Below are positions 3,571 to 49,710 of a stretch of DNA of 64,000 nt, piece after piece. The notes under the pieces are model-generated. The model ran no database searches and had not been told where the DNA came from. It saw nothing but the letters and a program-made list of their open reading frames with translations. Source of the stretch: Pecten maximus (lineage: Eukaryota); contig NC_047030.1 of the NCBI RefSeq assembly GCF_902652985.1, positions 11,780,001-11,844,000 on the forward strand, given 5' to 3'. Position numbers and translations under genes: made by a program. Position 1 is the first letter of the stretch; the number at the start of each line of letters is the position of its first letter.

Positions 3571-5264
3571 CTACGTAATAATCTCACAATGAACCAGGTG
3601 AGGGAATAAAACAGAAAAATGATCAAAAAGGATAACTAGAGCAAAATAAGAAGGGGCTCACATAGACATAGGCATGTGTACTTAATTGTTTGTGTGTTAA
3701 TACATGAGACCTTGTAGTAATAATTTAACCACAGGAATTTACAGCCAATGTTCAGCCATATTGGTATTGATTGGTATTGACCTATATTCCTACATACAAA
3801 GGCTATCCTTCAATCTGTCCACTTAATCGATCATGAATACTAGAATACATGTGTTTGTTTGAAGTCATGGCCAAAAATATTTCCAAAGCAGATGTGTAAT
3901 TATACTACAGTTTGTACTCGCTGAATATGTCTATATCACTGTACTACTTATTGTACATGTATATTTCACAATAGGTTGAAAATATGTCTGAGAACAATCA
4001 TGCTTTACCCATATATATACCTGTACCTGTATTTTAGGGGAAATAAATATTGATGACATACACCCTAAACAAAAGCAGGTGGAGATACACTTATATAGGG
4101 ACAGGTGTGCTTATTGGATAACTATGGTAATATGTACAACAGAGAAATAAAAATAATTATCGAAAGCAACCTTAAATATCTCATTATCTGAAGACATCTA
4201 GTTAATGGTACATTTTTACCACAGATTATATTCATATATATACAGGTACTTGTATGTTAGCTTTAATATGTACAATAAGTCATGTACCTTATTTATGAAA
4301 TAGTTCATTAATTTTTAAAGTGAACTTTTAATATACCTCCTCTCTGAACCAGGTTTGGTTTGGTTTAGTATTGAGATCCCTATCAACAGCTATGGTCATC
4401 TAAGACACCATCTGAACCAGGTAATTTGGATATACGTGTCACAGGTATATTGTGTACAGAGTCATTATACTGTGATGAAGTTGCTTTCTAGCTTTACACT
4501 AGTGGGGATTTATCTTTAGTGTGATAGGTAGAGCGGCTGACTGTCAAGTCAAGGGTCATTTAGGCGGTGTGAAGTTTGATTCTCGGTGGAGACTCATTAT
4601 TTGCTTTTCCTGTTACATCTGGTGCCGTGACCAGGATAATACAGGATTTCAGGATTTCACAGGAAAACTTCTTATTTCTGGGATGTGGCAAATGTTTTAA
4701 TAACCTAGTTCCAATATGTGGCACTCTACTTTATCAGAAAGCATTTCAAATTGTCTAATGTAGCAAGAATTATTATGAACTTCACATCCACTAATAACAC
4801 CATTGTAAGAAATTGTTCATTTCAGTAAAATCGAAGAATTATTTGAAATAAAAACAAAAATTGCCCAATGAGCCAGTAAACTATGAATGTTCTCAGGGAT
4901 AACAGAGCTGCTTTGTTCTAAAAATAATCTCCAAGGTCTTTATGAATACAATAGCCCTGAGCAGGTGATACGGCAATGAGCAGCATACTAGAGTGTAGAT
5001 CTGTGTTTATTGATCTAATGTTGCTACACTCCGGTACCACTACAGGTAGAAACGTCAGTCATCAGGTGTGCCAATGATCAGCTTTTACTGGAACTGACAG
5101 AGAATTAAATGATGCATGGATTTATGATATTGTATTGTCATTTGATCTAATCTAAATAGGACATGTATTTGTGTGAATACATGAAAAAAACTGTCAGGAT
5201 TATTCTCATTCTGGTGCCACAATCATGCAATAATGTAAAAGACAGGCGTCAACAGGGGAGGATG

Positions 5265-7510
5265 GTACACAGCCTTGTTTATAGTGGGACAGTACACAGC
5301 CTGGTTTATAGTGGGACAGTACACATCCTGGTGTATAGTGGGACAGTACACAGCCTGGTTTATAGTGGGACAGTACACAACCTGGTTTATAGTGGGACAG
5401 TACACAGCCTGGTTTATAGTGGGACAGGACACAACCTGGTTTATAGTGGGACAGTACACAGTCTGGTTTATAGTGGGACAGTACACAGCCTGGTTTATAG
5501 TGGACAGTACACAGCCAGGTTTATAGTGGGACAGTATACAGTCTGGTTTATAGTGGGACAGTACACAGTCTGGTTTATAGTGGGACAGTACACAGCCTGG
5601 TTTATAGTGGGACAGTACACAGTCCGGTTTATAGTGGGACAGTACACAGTCTGGTTTATAGTGGGACAGTACACAGCCTGGTTTATAGTGGGACAGTACA
5701 CAGCCTGGTTTATAGTGGGACAGTACATAGCCTGGTTTATAGTGGGACAGTACACAGCCTGGTTTATAGTGGGACAGTACACAGCCTGGTTTATAGTGGG
5801 ACAGTACACAGCCTGGTTTACAGTGGGACAGTACACAGCCTGGTTTACAGTGGGACAGTACACAGCCTGGTTTATAGTGGGACAGTACACAGCCTGGTTT
5901 ATAGTGGGACAGTACACAGCCTGGTTTACAGTGGGACAGTACACAGTCTGGTTTATAGTGGGACAGTACATAGCCTGGTTTATAGTGGGACAGTACATAG
6001 CCTGGTTTATAGTGGGACAGTACACAGTCTGGTTTATAGTGAGACAGTACATAGCCTGGTTTATAGTGGGACAGTACATAGCCTGGTTTATAGTGGACAG
6101 TACACACCCTGGTTTATAGTGGGACAGTATACAGTCTGGTTTATAGTGGGACAGTACACAGTCTGGTTTATAGTGGGATAGGATACAGCCTGGTTTATAG
6201 TGGGACAGTACACATCCTGGTTTATAGTGGGACAGTACACAGCCTGGTTTATAGTCGGACAGTACACAGCCTGGTTTATAGTGGGACAGTACACAGCCTG
6301 GTTTATAGTGGGACAGTACACAGCCTGGTTTATAGTGGGACAGTACATAGCCTGGTTTATAGTGGGACAGTACACAGCCTGGTTTATAGTGGGACAGTAC
6401 ACAGCCTGGTTTATAGTGGGACAGTACACAGTCTGGTTTATAGTGGGACAGTACACAGCCTGGTTTATAGTGGGACAGTACATAGCCTGGTTTATAGTGG
6501 GACAGTTCACAGCCTGGTTTATAGTGGGACAGTACACAGCCTGGTTTATAGTGGGACAGTACACAGCCTGGTTTATAGTGGGACAGTACACATCCTGGTT
6601 TATAGTGGGACAGTACACAGTCTGGTTTATAGTGGGACAGTATACATTCTGGTTTATAGTGGGACAGTACACAGCCTGGTTTATAGTGGGACAGTACACA
6701 GCCTGGTTTATAGTGGGACAGTACAGTCTGGTTTATAGTGGGACAGTACATAGCCTGGTTTATAGTGGCACAGTACACAGCCTGGTTTATAGTGGGACAG
6801 TACACAGCCTCAGGTTTATAGTGGGACAGTACACAGTCTGGTTTATAGTGGGACAGTACACACCCTGGTTTATAGTGGGACAGTACACAGCCTGGTTTAT
6901 AGTGGGACAGTACACAGTCTGGGTTATAGTGGGACAGTACATAGCCTGGTTTATAGTGGGACAGTACACAGTCTGGTTTATAGTGGGACAGTACACAGCC
7001 TGGTTTATAGTGGGACAGTACACAGTCTGGTTTATAGTGGGACAGTACACAGCCCGGTTTATAGTGGGACAGTACACAGCCCGGTTTATAGTGGGACAGT
7101 ACACAGCCTGGTTTATAGTGGGACAGTACACAGTCTGGTTTATAGTGGGACAGTACACAGCCTGGTTTATAGTGGGACAGTACACAGTCTGGTTTATAGT
7201 GGGACAGTACAGTCTGGTTTATAGTGGGACAGTACACAGCCTGGTTTATAGTGGGACAGTACACAGCCTGGTTTATAGTGGGACAGTACACAGTCTGGTT
7301 TATAGTGGGACAGGACACAGCCTGGTTTATAGTGGGACAGGACACAGCCTGGTTTATAGTGGGACAGTACACAGCCTGGTTTATAGTGGGACAGTACACA
7401 GCCTGGTTTATAGTGGGACAGTACACAGCCTGGTTTATAGTGGGACAGTACACAGCCTGGTTTATAGTGGGACAGTACACAGCTTGGTTTATAGTGGGAC
7501 AGTACATAGT
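5265..7510. repeat. 27-bp minisatellite, ~83 copies
   Basis: Unit GTACACAGCCTGGTTTATAGTGGGACA with point variants and occasional 1-2 bp indels; source of all long ORFs at 5163-7534. Confidence 0.97.
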
Positions 7511-44180: not shown

Positions 44181-44550
44181 ATATTGCATGTTGTTATTTT
44201 TCTCCTTTGTGGAGTCGGTTTACATTATAATTAGCATATTTCGGTAAAATTCCTCAATCAAATACAGCCGTAATATTAACATATTTATTACTAGTAAAAT
44301 AGATGAAAACAACATTACACAGTAGATACAATTTCGCTGGTGTTTGCAGGACTTACTTCAGTGACCATCATAGTATGTATTAGTTTTAGAAAATGTATAC
44401 TTTACCGACTGGTCAGCCATTCTGCTGTTTGTTGAGAATATGTCTTCAGTTGAATTAAAGTGGATCACGTTATAAAGTCTAAAAAATTCTGAAAGACAAA
44501 AACAATAACTTCTTTCCATCAAAATATCCTAGTCATTGTTCAATTATTAA

Positions 44551-47500
44551 CCCTTGTGGTGCTGAATTGTCTTCCATTAGGATGGCATTAAGTGCTGATT
44601 TGTTTCAAAAACAATTTTTTACAAACCGTTTTTTTTTCTTCCTGCTAAAATATCAAGAATGATCCAAATGATGTATTCCAGACATTCAATGGCGGTTTGA
44701 ATATCAATTTTATGAAAAAATTAGCACTTCATCTGCTAAGCCTGAAAAAGTGCAAACTTCACATGAAAAAACAACAAAAGTCCAATAAACACAATTAAAA
44801 ATATTATTTAATTCTTTAAGATATCTTTTATCTATATGAGTACACAATATATATCTTTTATTTTATCAATAACAATAATTATAACTGAAATGATTAATGG
44901 AATCTGAAATGTTATCACTCAAGGGAGATAATTTGAAATTATTTTACTCAAGGGAGATAATCTTAAATTTTGTTACTGAAAAGAAATGACCAATGTCCTA
45001 TCCAGGAAGTTGCATTTCACAGCGTTTTCAGCTACAAGAGCTATTACTCCTCCTCCTGTCTCCTCTGACGCTTGTAGGCAAGCACAAATTCTGCAGTTGT
45101 ATGGAATAGCTCAAAGCAGGGTTCAACACACAGAGCTACCTGACACTGCTTGCACTGAAAACATGTCGTCCTCCCACAAGATTTCGGCACTGTCTCACCA
45201 GGATGCTGGGACCTGAACAAATCGGTCTCTGCTGGACCGCAGACAATACATTTCCTGCTGGCATGGGCTTTCCTTCCTGTTGATGGAGAGTAGCCAATGA
45301 AATGCCGCGCTGTCAACCTCTGAAGCACTTCAGCAGATTGCCTCCTCCTCCCCTTTTGCTGTGGGCCTATGGATTAGAAACATATATATGATTATTTACG
45401 CATGCAATGATTATAATGAAGATTATCATAATTTGTCTCTTAAAATGTTACACTGAATCAGTATAAATGTACACAATTCAATGTAAGTTGAAACTAAACC
45501 TATTATTTAATAAAGAATACTGTTGAACTTTGATCATAATCTAGTTATTTCATCTGGTATAAATTGAACTTTATATAGTTCATATAATGAAATACATGTT
45601 ATACAGAGTGTAAATATAAGTTTATGAGATATATATATATATATATACGTGTATATACACGTCTTTTTATATATTTGTGTGTGTGTGTGTGTCCATATAC
45701 GTGTATATCAATGAATCCTTAAATCTGACATTACCTTATGGTAATACAAATCACAAAACTTTTTTGTAGAGTTACAATGTAACTAAAGTTAATTTAGAAG
45801 ACAGCACTATTTCAAAACTTACCAGAGATCTCAGCAGCAGAGACCAGTTGACTCACAAGCTGTCGTCTGAAAATCCTGTGCAATACTGGGTTGGCTGTCT
45901 GTTGTTTGTACAAGATGTACGAGTTGAGCACTGCAAGACCAAGCATGTGGAAGAAGACCTTTTTCCACCATTTTAGTGTCCTTCTGTCAAATCCAGCATA
46001 TGCCACCATCTGGTCACATCTGTCTACTGCACCCATGTTGTGGTTGTAATCTAACACACAGTCTGGCTTGGCAATCAAGTTCCCCTCTGAATCTCTCTTT
46101 GCAGTGTTGACCATTTTTCCTAAATAGCAGCAATATGGAGAATATTTTAACAAAGTTTGATAAATTTATTGTTTCATTGAAATTTTATAACAGGTCAAAT
46201 AATAACGTCTTATGATAAAATTACCATAATGATATCAATAACTTAATATTGGAATCAACATAGAGATATTTCATAGTTCAGAGGGAGCTCAAAGTAATGT
46301 CAGTAATATTACCAGAAAATTAGTAAAATAATGCACATGTAGCAGACCTTACTTGTAATACTTGTAGCATTATTCATTCATCACAGAGTTTCAATATAAG
46401 CAAAATGCGATTATATAAATATGAAATTGATCAAATATTTGAAAAGTTACAAATCAATAGTATACCATTGATAAAGGTTTGCAGACATCAACAATGTAAT
46501 CCAAAAAGAAATACAGATCATAGGCCAAAAGCGTGATGTATATTAAGTCAAAAACTGTATTGCACAAGAGTGTATTCATGATATAAATTCATAAGCAATT
46601 TCTGAATAGGTACATACCTTCATGGATTGTTGTTAGGAGACAGACTTCTTTTTTATCGGAAAACTTCACTGCCACTAAAGTTCCATTGTTGAATGCCATC
46701 ATCTGGCCTTTGCATGGATGAGCATTTTTCATCTTGTCTGGAACTCCTCTCCGATTGCTGCGTAACGTTCCACAAGCAAGGGTACCATTAAGCCACAGGT
46801 TATAAAATAGTGCTGGACTGCTGAAGTAATTGTCCATATAAATCTTGTAACCTTTCAAAAGGTATGGTTCGGCCAGCCGCATAACAAGATCATAAGTCAC
46901 CCCGTACTCGCTGACTTCTGATGGACGACCAGTATACAGCTCCACTCGCGAACAATATCCATTCTTAGAGTCACAGAGCATGTAAAGCTTTATTCCGTAC
47001 TTGATTGGTTTGTCCGGACTATACACCCTAAACTTCAAATTTCCCCTCCAAGCAATCATTCCCTCATCTACTGCTACACACTGACTAGGATTGTAGACTT
47101 CCTGGAATCTCTGAAGAAGCTCTTGGTAGGGAGAACCAAGTTTTTGAAGAGGAGTATAACCTTCCTCGCCACGGGGAACAGCCAAAGTGTTGTTGGACAA
47201 GTGCAAGAAACTCATGATCGACAGGAACCTATCACGGGGCATCACAGAAGAAAAAAATGGCGTACTTACTACAGGGTCAGTGCACCAATAGTCCTGCATG
47301 TTAATCTGCTTTATAATTCCCATTGCAATTGCCACTGCTATAAAAGCCTTCATCTCACCATGGGTCACTGGAGTCCATTTCTTGAAGCGGGAGTGCTGAG
47401 TAGGCTCTGGATGTCCTTGGATATAAATGTTGGCATACCTGTTGGTTTCAGTGACAATTTTATCCAGAATACCGTCTGTGAAAACCGCTTCAAAGTAGTC

Positions 47501-48536
47501 AAGAATGGATAATGATCCAGTCTCTGGCTCAGGCAAGTTCTTAGGTCCAGCATTCCCCGTGAATGTAAACCCCATGGGAGTTTTACCGCCTTCTATCCAG
47601 GTATCTTCAGCAAATAACCCCAATAAATCGCCGTCGTTATTCTCCTCATCAATATCGAACCCGTCAAACTCATCGCTATCTTCATCATCAAATATTTCGT
47701 CAAATAACTCTTGAAACTCTGGTAAGACTTGACCGATCGTAAAGTTGCCTGCCATGTTGTTTACATCTGCGACGAGCACTTCCGGTGTTTGGTCAAAGTG
47801 AAAGTCGAGATAAATTCGTCTGGTTTTAGCATGATTCTTACGCTTTATTTCAAACGCCAGTGATGGTAAATGACAACACCAATACAAATATCATATTTCA
47901 GTGATTTAATATCCATGTATTCCGCCGAAGACAACAGGACATCGAATTTAATTAACCGATTGACTAAGAAGTCAATGACTGCGCATGACATTACTTCAGG
48001 ACGACTATTAGCTTCGATCTTTTTTACTTGTCTGTAAACAACGACAATAAGATCGAATTAAAACGTAAATAAAATCACGAAGAACATCGATAGACTCCGT
48101 GTTATTGTACATACCTCAATTCTTGTTTGTAAATTAGCCGAGAAATAGCATTATTCCTTATAGTAACAGAGCACCTGTTTCCGACATTGGCGGTAAAATT
48201 ACGTCATCTACTTTCACAACCCATGCGCATTCGTCGAAACTTCAAAGCCTTCCGCTGAGCTAAAAATATCGTAGTTGCAGACGAAGCGGAGGATTCCCAG
48301 TGGTTACGTTATGGTTGTTTCAGAACTACGACGTATTGGGCTTTGGTCTTCAGTAACTAAATTTTTAAGATTCTTAGCTTTTAGGCACACGTGAGTCATT
48401 TTTTTAATTTCAGACTCAAACTTGTATTTTTAGCCACCGATATCTGGGGGTTTTCCCATTTTTCTCTGGCGGGTATATATACCCGTTCAGCACCCAACCG
48501 ATGGATCAGATATATACCCGTTCAGCACCACTAGGG
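44551..48536 (-). mobile_element. Full-length piggyBac DNA transposon (3,986 bp)
   Basis: TTAA at 44547-50 and 48537-40; TIRs CCCTTGTGGTGCTGAA / CCCTAGTGGTGCTGAA (15/16); subterminal GTGCTGA repeats at both ends; encloses the transposase gene. Confidence 0.95.
45044..47755 (-). CDS. piggyBac (PGBD4-like) transposase, 3 exons, 585 aa, apparently intact
   Basis: Exons 47755-46618, 46119-45823, 45366-45044 joined by phase-1 GT-AG introns (1758 nt, no internal stop). DDD triad VDEGM / YMDNYFSS / MGAVDRCDQ; WWKKVFF; C-terminal cysteine-rich domain CIVC...CKQC..ALCVEPCFELFH. Confidence 0.92.
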
Positions 48537-49710
48537 TTAAATGTTGATGAAACTTCAAAAGTATTTATATATTATCATTTTTAATTATCAAATTTAAGAG
48601 TCAAGAGTTTTTATGTCCAGATCAATTTATTTTTAGGAATTAGTGACAATTCTGTATCAAATATTTATTTTTTTGTTATAAAATTAATTTGGTTATTATT
48701 AATTGAAAAAAAAAAATAGCCCCTTCTTTTCGATATAGTAGAGTAGGGGATAATTTTTTTTAATTATTTACTAACCAGAAGCGGACGCCTGTGATTATAC
48801 TTACTGCTGTCAAGTTATTACATTAATGCAGGACAAAAATATAGCTATGCGCCGTGATATTGCATTGCCTTACATAGGGACCTGTATTTTTTGTTTTGTT
48901 TTATGATTGTTTCATCTAGGTTGCTAAATCTGTTCAACCAAGTCACAAAATGAAACATATAAATCTTCCGCGATGTTGAAATGGACCCTTTTTGATGACA
49001 ACGAAAACTTGATATGCACTAAGCTTACTGCTCTACAGTATCATAAATACACGTATACAAATGTACTAATCCCTCATCACAACAGGTCCCTGTGTCGGAT
49101 GTATTCCTATCGCGACTACACGTGGGACCGAGGTGATAGTATACAAACCACGTGAGTGATGCACGACAATATTTATATGTCATTGCATTCATTTGAGTTA
49201 CGAATATTGTCACTTCGTTCTCATAACGTCGCAGTTATCATGAAACAACCTACCTTCAGGAGTATTCCTAATTAATTGGTTGCTGTTCGGAACATCTTGA
49301 TGTCTTCATTACTGGGAGGATATTGTTCGACGAGTTCCGAGTGAAGTCATCTGACAATATACGAAACGGACAAAATCCGGATATTTTATGTAACACGAAT
49401 AGTAAAATACGTTTGTATATATATATATTTTATTCTCATTTATAATATCCAATCATTTAACCGATATTTTGTTCGTATGTTACGTTCTGTTCTATTTAGG
49501 TGTTTTGTCCTGAATATACATGTATCTAAGATTGTAATTTTGTTTGATTTGAAAATGATAATTCAGCATACTGTAGCATTTTGGCACTGCTTACAGTTTT
49601 TTATGACTACGAATACAGCGAAAATAAATCATTTGCGAAAATCAATATACCGTAAATATTACCATATTGATAGTTAGGTATAGATAGGCTAATAACTGTT
49701 TCTCAGCTCC

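Follow-up and report, generated by a model that had tools for sequence, protein, structure and literature searches.

The segment 44547-48540 of the window (the whole stretch of 64,000 nucleotides of Pecten maximus DNA analyzed, to which all window positions refer) is best explained, with good confidence, as one copy from a scallop family of autonomous DNA transposons that belongs to the piggyBac superfamily. The element is of a known kind and does not define a new class; it is a new, and probably active, member. Its demonstrated features are the anatomy, the copy structure, the insertion polymorphism, the splicing of two introns out of the transposase transcript, and purifying selection on all three coding exons.

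Structure of the element

The components of the element, all on the minus strand, are given below in the direction of transcription.

44547-48540, minus strand: piggyBac element, 3,994 bases
48537-48540, minus strand: TTAA target-site duplication at the 5' end of the element, found in 4/4 complete copies, with unrelated flanks
48521-48536, minus strand: 5' terminal inverted repeat CCCTAGTGGTGCTGAA, the same in every copy
48475-48529, minus strand: subterminal 20-nt repeat in two direct copies (48529-48510 and 48494-48475), read directly from the sequence
47756-48326, minus strand: probable 5' leader, 571 nt; an RNA-type contig of run X2 ends at 48326 in sequencing adapter
46618-47755, minus strand: coding exon 1, 1138 nt, residues 1-379 plus 1 nt
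46120-46617, minus strand: intron 1, 498 nt, GT-AG (GTATGT...TTTAG), phase 1, 27% G+C
45823-46119, minus strand: coding exon 2, 297 nt, completing the catalytic core and contributing the third Asp (D412) as well as D415
45367-45822, minus strand: intron 2, 456 nt, GT-AG (GTAAGT...CATAG), phase 1, 25% G+C
45044-45366, minus strand: coding exon 3, 323 nt with the TAA stop (45046-45044) counted in, cysteine-rich C-terminal domain C518-H567
44567-45043, minus strand: 3' untranslated region, AATAAA at 44862-44857, covered by contigs in runs X2 and X4
44551-44566, minus strand: 3' terminal inverted repeat, inward reading CCCTTGTGGTGCTGAA
44547-44550, minus strand: TTAA target-site duplication at the 3' end of the element

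The inverted repeats are 16 bp long and differ at one position, the 5' end reading CCCTAG... and the 3' end CCCTTG..., an asymmetry present in every genomic copy. Short repeats with CCC...GGG termini and a TTAA duplication are both found in the element, as in the piggyBac superfamily at large. The 20-nt subterminal repeat overlaps the 5' inverted repeat, and two TCAGCAC motifs in inverse orientation were read from the sequence at the 3' end. The transcript may start near 48326; a TATA-like TTAAAAAT is located ~30 nt upstream of this position. The presumed leader contains 14 upstream ATGs, which would lower the efficiency of translation.

The transposase gene

The three exons, when joined, make a frame of 1758 nt (585 codons plus the stop) with zero internal stops. 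Pfam and structure searches were run exon by exon, the joined frame being computed by a local script. Exon 1 supplies an acidic N-terminus together with the larger part of the DDE_Tnp_1_7 core, including D230 and D308, and matches the Pfam profile (PF13843) at positions 4-281 (E 4.8e-72); exon 2 matches positions 291-349 of the same profile (E 3.7e-11). As the profile resumes at 291 in exon 2, removal of intron 1 restores a continuous domain, in which D230, D308 and D412 make up the DDD triad and reside in motifs shared with piggyBat. The introns are much poorer in G+C than the exons (25-27% vs. 44-52%), and intron 2 contains CA and TA microsatellites.

Residues 518-567 include eight Cys and one His (C518...C562, H567). 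The score of zf-Tnp_2 on exon 3 (17.3 bits) is under the 24-bit Pfam cut-off; a C-terminal cysteine-rich domain is nonetheless recognizable, exon 3 being homologous to the C-termini of relatives carrying PF13842 (P0010, E 6.6e-16). Searches of exon 3 against solved structures gave weak GATA-finger matches alone (E 0.014 and worse), taken as generic zinc-finger resemblance. The TTAA, the 16-bp repeats, the 585-aa frame with its two AT-rich phase-1 GT-AG introns, the three catalytic Asp and the cysteine-rich domain had all been proposed in a sequence-only reading of the window, and each was recovered at the same positions. The entry for the locus in the protein database spans just 297 residues of exon 1.

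Transcription and splicing

Four public runs were searched as assembled contigs rather than raw reads; they bear no tissue labels, and X1 is the sole run recorded as RNA, X2 and X4 being labelled as RNA by a guess of the index. One X2 contig joins 46119 to 46618, skipping exactly the 498 nt of intron 1, and another joint in X2 connects 45366 to 45823, skipping exactly the 456 nt of intron 2; read on the minus strand, each skipped stretch begins with GT and finishes with AG. A near-identical intron-2 joint was found in X4. Coverage in X2 is zero over the flanks, over the initial ~215 nt of the element and within intron 2, which is the pattern expected of RNA. Both junctions are also used by the NCBI protein P0064 (279 aa), which consists of 73 residues from the end of exon 1, a Gly, exon 2, a Gly and exon 3. 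Both introns, which the sequence-only reading had predicted to be spliced at these very junctions, are thus removed in RNA, as expected of an intron-bearing mobile piggyBac of the Pokey type.

Unspliced contigs, running from exon into both introns, were found in X1, X2 and X4, the contigs of X1 being exclusively unspliced. One possible origin lies in the position of the element, which resides, in sense orientation, in the intron 49253-44489 of a host gene, 58 nt upstream of the acceptor of the following exon:

44406-44488, minus strand: host gene exon 2, holding the host ATG; in RNA contigs 49254 is joined to 44488, and 44406 to 27400, by splicing

With a sense copy in its intron, the host pre-mRNA contains the element. 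Unspliced contigs could equally come from host-gene pre-mRNA, DNA carry-over or degenerate copies.

The same contigs are relevant to an additional, and doubtful, level of complexity, transposition being controlled by splicing as in the P element of Drosophila. This would supplement, not replace, the interpretation of the element as an autonomous transposon. The reading frame stops after residue 388 if intron 1 is retained, and after residue 481 if intron 2 is retained; the former product is predicted to miss the third Asp, the latter the cysteine-rich domain. Both truncated frames, computed here, are exactly those anticipated from the sequence, and contigs retaining either intron do exist. The P element provides a general precedent for control of this type, and its tissue-specific splicing is established. 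Efficient intron removal might accordingly be restricted (e.g., to the germ line), the products of 388 aa or 481 aa made in some tissues limiting or repressing transposition, yet this seems rather unlikely. Host pre-mRNA extending across the sense copy is a simpler source of unspliced contigs; those of X1 run past both ends of the element into flanking DNA, and in several unspliced contigs there are variants characteristic of the degenerate copies. Were intron retention to damp transposition, a P-element-like regulation would have evolved independently in a piggyBac.

Copies and insertion polymorphism

Six near-full copies (L001-L006) and 26 inverted-repeat ends were found in 918 Mb. The copy at 44547-48540 (L001, on C16), L002 (C5) and L003 (C13) share 99.2-99.6% pairwise identity and, once the intron-2 microsatellite is excluded, differ at no more than 0.1-0.2% of sites. 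All three are inserted at different TTAA sites, are flanked by TTAA duplications and unrelated DNA, and keep both the 1758-nt spliced frame and the GT/AG ends of the two introns. The remaining copies, L004 to L006, have frameshifts and an identity of 96-98%. Near-identical copies at other TTAA sites, for which the sequence-only reading suggested a search, are represented by L002 and L003 (>99% identity). The copies did not arise by segmental duplication, the flanks being unrelated up to the TTAA.

Empty-site alleles, likewise suggested as a check, emerged from comparing the contigs of the public runs with the reference. In X1 both ends of the element join flanks which in the reference are contiguous over a single TTAA (C17:9796732-35). 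In X4 the 5' end of the element is joined to C14:10359009-12, an empty site in the reference, and one 3' end to a C12 TTAA (at about 25309236-39), similarly empty. At all three sites the reference has a single TTAA exactly where the run contigs bear the element. Since element ends are joined to flanks uninterrupted in the reference, the insertions vary between individuals; the empty sites are evidence of polymorphism, and are silent on the time or the rate of movement. The 22-nt flank of a 3' junction in X2 had no match in the reference at ≤1 mismatch.

The occurrence of several copies at non-homologous sites, polymorphic for presence or absence, is that of a mobile piggyBac. The family is very young, and the element is probably still mobile; from the intact copies, the empty sites and the spliced contigs, which bear out the earlier proposal of an intact, potentially mobile piggyBac with two true spliceosomal introns, we infer both catalytic activity and ongoing mobility. 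The family may alternatively have become extinct only recently, the young copies being immobile because of silencing, or of an inactivating substitution common to all three copies scored as intact. Copy number is indeed low, three of the six near-full copies are frameshifted, and activity is a property that we infer. Extinction is nevertheless improbable, slightly more so than control by splicing: the intact copies hardly diverge, at least three non-reference insertions were found among three runs, the element is transcribed and spliced, and every catalytic residue is retained.

The multi-exon structure, and the automated NCBI name ('piggyBac transposable element-derived protein 4-like'), might suggest a domesticated host gene of the PGBD type. 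This is refuted by the copy structure and has very little probability left: inverted repeats and TTAA duplications are intact, and the presence of several non-homologous loci, polymorphic for presence or absence, is the opposite of a single-copy gene fixed at one locus. It is just as hard to believe that the spliced contigs derive from intron-less DNA copies (retrocopies) and not from RNA, a suspicion raised by the guessed labels of X2 and X4, as a DNA library would have covered the regions in which X2 has zero depth, and searches of the genome with the element and with its introns detected no intron-less copy of the family.

The preferred interpretation, an autonomous transposon, may be worked out as follows. 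Transcription would start in the 5' region of the element itself; the two AT-rich phase-1 introns are spliced out by the spliceosome, and the mRNA codes for a DDD transposase of 585 residues that ends in a cysteine-rich DNA-binding domain. If it acts like its piggyBac and piggyBat counterparts, this protein would bind the 16-bp terminal and the subterminal repeats, cut the element out and insert it again at TTAA. The introns belong to the element and move along with it as DNA, and the family has moved recently enough for individuals to differ in their insertions.

Only a small number of piggyBac elements are known to be active in nature, and bivalve molluscs are short of good transgenesis tools. 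A native piggyBac which is intact, transcribed and polymorphic is hence a reasonable candidate vector/helper for mollusc genome engineering, the king scallop being moreover a commercially important species.

Comparison with known elements

The best matches among solved structures are piggyBat from Myotis lucifugus (PDB 9c0f) and the T. ni piggyBac (PDB 6x67/6x68). E values were 6.4e-46 (piggyBat 9c0f) and 3.4e-27 (T. ni 6x67) for exon 1, 2.3e-13 and 1.2e-07, respectively, for exon 2, and sequence searches of exon 3 against the same structures gave no significant match. The DDD motifs …DEG…, …YMDNY… and …VDR.DQ… are kept in the three proteins, which are similar in length (585 aa in the scallop, 578 in piggyBat, 594 in T. 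ni piggyBac) and have TTAA as common target. Unlike the scallop gene, both piggyBat and T. ni piggyBac consist of a single uninterrupted reading frame.

Pokey, a member of the piggyBac superfamily from Daphnia, is likewise mobile, features inverted repeats, TTAA sites and an intron in the transposase gene, and the splicing of this intron was demonstrated by RT-PCR (PMC3849761). Pokey inserts into rDNA and its one intron is short (68-84 nt), whereas the scallop element, with two introns each about 0.5 kb long, is found at dispersed TTAA sites. Introns also break the piggyBac-derived coding sequence of PGBD genes such as PGBD5 (PMC5381638). PGBD genes, however, are single-copy, fixed, devoid of inverted repeats and often of the catalytic triad; the scallop element combines inverted repeats and target duplications with a complete triad, and exists in several copies that are polymorphic. 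The sequence-only reading regarded multi-exon piggyBac genes as typically domesticated, a view which overstates the rarity of mobile ones, given the intron of Pokey (PMC3849761) and the presence of intron 1 in diverged scallop lineages (see below). The P element of Drosophila is similarly a DNA transposon with introns in the transposase gene, one of which, if retained, would truncate the protein, but belongs to another superfamily and relies on another chemistry.

The scallop piggyBac is a clean example of spliceosomal introns inside a cut-and-paste transposon, and allows one to ask whether introns alter the way in which the host treats a transposon. It is also a caution that surveys for long single reading frames miss or truncate intron-bearing elements.

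Intron distribution and selection in sister lineages

A sister piggyBac family of this genome, represented by P0002 (593 aa) and by loci such as L035/L036, is 62-71% identical at the amino-acid level, has an almost identical inverted repeat (CCCTAGTAGTGCTGAA), and carries intron 1 at the corresponding codon and in the same phase. Intron 2 is missing from this family (P0002/L036), exons 2 and 3 being contiguous in one frame. In the comparison with P0002/L036, non-synonymous differences per site ranged from 0.19 to 0.25 in the single exons, synonymous differences from 0.81 to 0.88, indicating that all three exons are constrained at the protein level; the contrast is given as pN/pS, saturation of the synonymous sites (pS about 0.85) making dN/dS not computable.

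A phase-1 intron at the intron-1 position resides also in loci L036, L037 and L038, and is thus common to several diverged, mobile-looking piggyBac lineages. The genome hosts in addition piggyBacs with one uninterrupted reading frame, and lineages in which the frame is interrupted elsewhere. Intron 1 is old, being common to diverged sister lineages; intron 2 is shared with the closest relative only. Repeated gain of introns in the scallop piggyBac clade, at positions varying from lineage to lineage, has better chances of being true than the control of transposition by splicing, and would provide a natural system for intron gain in mobile DNA. Related lineages with unlike intron content, found in one genome, are in any case usable for the study of intron gain and loss in mobile DNA.

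The intron sequences, searched singly, matched just the copies of the family and a 70%-identical relative on C14. They are therefore not dispersed repeats, and insertion of such repeats, or of 'introner'-type elements, is ruled out as their origin. Locus L038 is frameshifted, and has ~1.2 kb at the place of intron 2.

Structure and coding capacity of the element

The piggyBac element resides on the minus strand, and its anatomy was read on that strand over window 44400-48700:

48540-48537, minus strand: 5' TTAA, followed by CCCTAGTGGTGCTGAA
47755-46618, minus strand: coding exon 1, 1138 nt
46119-45823, minus strand: coding exon 2, 297 nt
45366-45044, minus strand: coding exon 3, 323 nt
44550-44547, minus strand: 3' TTAA, directly preceded by TTCAGCACCACAAGGG

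The two 16-bp inverted-repeat arms, ranked by the repeat finder as the second-best inverted pair of the region, differ by one mismatch. Every genomic copy shows this asymmetry, with CCCTAG at the 5' end and CCCTTG at the 3' end, which therefore characterises the family and does not reflect decay. The exons add up to 1758 nt: 585 codons and the TAA stop. The introns, both GT-AG, interrupt the frame in phase 1 and have a G+C content of 25-27%, vs. 44-52% in exons. The TTAA duplication, the 16-bp repeats, the 585-codon frame and the two AT-rich phase-1 introns had been noticed in the sequence-only reading and are confirmed. If the RNA begins near 48326, where one contig terminates in adapter, the leader (47756-48326, minus strand) is 571 nt long and carries 14 upstream ATGs with short reading frames, which would make translation of the transposase inefficient.

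Protein searches were run one exon at a time, the joined exons being used for frame arithmetic only. Exon 1 matches the Pfam domain DDE_Tnp_1_7 at profile positions 4-281 (E 4.8e-72), exon 2 at positions 291-349 (E 3.7e-11), hence removal of intron 1 restores one continuous catalytic domain. Among solved structures, the closest are two transposases: that of piggyBat (9c0f), with E 6.4e-46 (exon 1) and 2.3e-13 (exon 2), and that of T. ni piggyBac (6x67). Motif alignment assigns the three catalytic Asp noted in the first reading to residues 230 and 308 (exon 1) and 412 (exon 2, with D415). The cysteine-rich domain is represented by eight Cys and one His at residues 518-567 in exon 3; the direct zf-Tnp_2 score of this exon is 17.3 bits, under the 24-bit cut-off, and the C-termini of relatives with a zf-Tnp_2 domain align to it. 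Comparison with the sister family gave pN values of 0.19-0.25 and pS values of 0.81-0.88 in each of the three exons, indicating that all are constrained coding sequences.

Genomic copies and insertion polymorphism

The search for copies covered the genome of the window (918,306,378 bases, 3,983 contigs), and yielded six near-full copies, in addition to fragments and to relatives at a greater distance. The family is low-copy, as the assembly holds only 26 inverted-repeat ends. The window copy (on C16) and those on contigs C5 and C13 are 99.2-99.6% identical to one another; C13 carries a further complete copy, the fourth, at 97%. All four are bounded by TTAA on each side, with flanks unrelated up to it, so that near-identical copies do reside at other TTAA sites. 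The three youngest copies retain the ATG, the 1758-nt spliced frame and GT/AG at all four splice sites, and differ at about 0.1-0.2% of sites, when the intron-2 microsatellite is excluded; copies at 96-98% are frameshifted. In the C14 copy (L005, C14:13749501-13753405; L025, C14:13747164-13747267) about 2.2 kb of other DNA is inserted near element position 100. L006, on a small contig (C2711:888-4751), has the same flanks as the C14 copy, and is probably the alternative haplotype or an assembly duplicate.

Contigs of four public runs were aligned to the element and its flanks. Run contigs leave the element exactly at its ends, and enter sequence unlike the window. In X1, the flanks of the 5' and 3' ends meet in the reference at a single, element-free TTAA (C17:9796732-35). 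In X4, a 5' flank adjoins the TTAA at C14:10359009-12, and one 3' flank the TTAA at C12, about 25309236-39; the reference lacks the element at both. The 3' flank found in X2 was searched for in the reference and not found. Altogether, at least three insertions, from three runs, are missing from the reference, so that individuals differ in their insertions. Non-reference insertions are what recent cut-and-paste movement into TTAA produces.

Splicing of the transposase RNA and the host gene

In X2, intron 2 is precisely absent from a contig of 1,040 nt, in which 45366 is followed directly by 45823 (456 nt skipped), and intron 1 from a second contig, in which 46119 adjoins 46618 (498 nt skipped). 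On the plus strand both missing stretches have CT..AC ends, i.e. GT..AG on the coding strand. A near-identical intron-2 joint is found in X4. In X2, coverage is zero over the flanks, the initial 215 nt of the element and the interior of intron 2, a pattern which fits an RNA and not a DNA library, the RNA label of X2 being itself a guess. Independent evidence comes from the NCBI protein P0064 ('piggyBac transposable element-derived protein 4-like [Pecten maximus]', 279 aa), which is made up of the last 73 residues of exon 1, Gly, exon 2, Gly and exon 3; both junctions are consequently present in the public model of the C5 copy. P0001, the database protein for the window copy, covers no more of exon 1 than its first 297 residues.

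X1, the sole run recorded as RNA-seq, features unspliced contigs only. Since these also extend into flanking DNA, they may represent pre-mRNA, read-through or DNA carry-over. A host gene, likewise on the minus strand, could be delineated from RNA contigs:

49254, minus strand: end of host exon 1, spliced to 44488
44488-44406, minus strand: host exon 2, with ATG; 44406 is spliced to 27400
27400, minus strand: start of the next host exon

The element lies in sense orientation within the first host intron, accounting for 3,990 of the 4,765 nt of that intron and leaving 58 nt between itself and the downstream exon-2 acceptor; the second host intron is about 17 kb long. Host pre-mRNA will consequently contain the unspliced element, which bears on the RNA data.

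The core of the sequence-only reading, an intact, potentially mobile piggyBac with spliced introns, finds support in the structure of the copies, in their insertion polymorphism and in the evidence for splicing. P-element-style control by splicing, suggested in the same reading, is a hypothetical addition. The window element is probably active.

Intron history and related families

Used separately as queries, introns 1 and 2 match only copies of the family and a degenerate C14 relative (70% identical, both introns present), which rules out that they are copies of a dispersed repeat. Three lineages at a greater distance (L036, L037 and L038; 59-69% amino-acid identity in exon 1) are interrupted at the codon of intron 1 by a GT-AG intron, likewise in phase 1 and 353-377 nt long. 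In the sister family (NCBI model P0002, 593 aa; inverted repeat CCCTAGTAGTGCTGAA) the frame continues across the intron-2 site. L037 and L038 feature extra GT-AG interruptions at different places within the region homologous to exon 2, which suggests lineage-specific intron gains:

L037 (C4:13064000-13072000), 5247-5496: 250 nt, phase 0
L038 (C16:26525000-26533000), 5060-5323: 264 nt, phase 2

Relatives from other sources (46-49% identity), which may stem from DNA or from transcripts, have a single frame across both intron sites. According to the whole-genome Pfam scan, the intron-bearing lineages share the genome with many piggyBac copies whose DDE domain is unbroken and whose open frames span 569-630 residues; several of these form groups of identical score, so that other families may be young too. 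Families are also split near profile position 282 (the clade of the window element) or near 178-190. A multi-copy family of the latter type has a gap of about 250-300 nt in the DDE domain, flanked by open frames, which is probably an intron, at a position unlike either intron of the window element.

Unbroken domain: C4:25524133-25525224
Unbroken domain: C13:17751145-17752239
Unbroken domain: C19:31308583-31309677
Split at 178/190: C3:15631876-15633275
Split at 178/190: C1:32639344-32640746
Split at 178/190: C14:24572611-24574010
Split at 178/190: C2:1820809-1822154

Transposase genes with introns are common in other superfamilies, as CACTA and P. Mobile piggyBac-like elements have been described as made up by one reading frame, introns being reported only for domesticated genes (Bouallègue et al., PMC5381638). 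The rarity of multi-exon mobile piggyBac elements had been overstated in the first reading, as Pokey of Daphnia is a mobile piggyBac with an RT-PCR-confirmed intron (PMC3849761); this measures 68-84 nt, vs. 498 and 456 nt in the scallop element. A survey of bivalve transposons lists 27 piggyBac consensus sequences, for which frames >300 residues were required, and does not discuss introns (PMC10294476).

A differently labelled organism, B (run X17, compared with window 44247-48840), also has the element, about 95-99% identical and with portions of introns 1 and 2; in one of its contigs, 48688 is connected back to 44846 through 33 unrelated letters. P0028, a piggyBac transposase of 597 residues that shares 40% identity with exon 1, bears the database name 'MAG: transposase [Candidatus Thiodiazotropha taylori]', which refers to a clam symbiont; it probably stems from host DNA that was assigned to the bacterial genome during binning.
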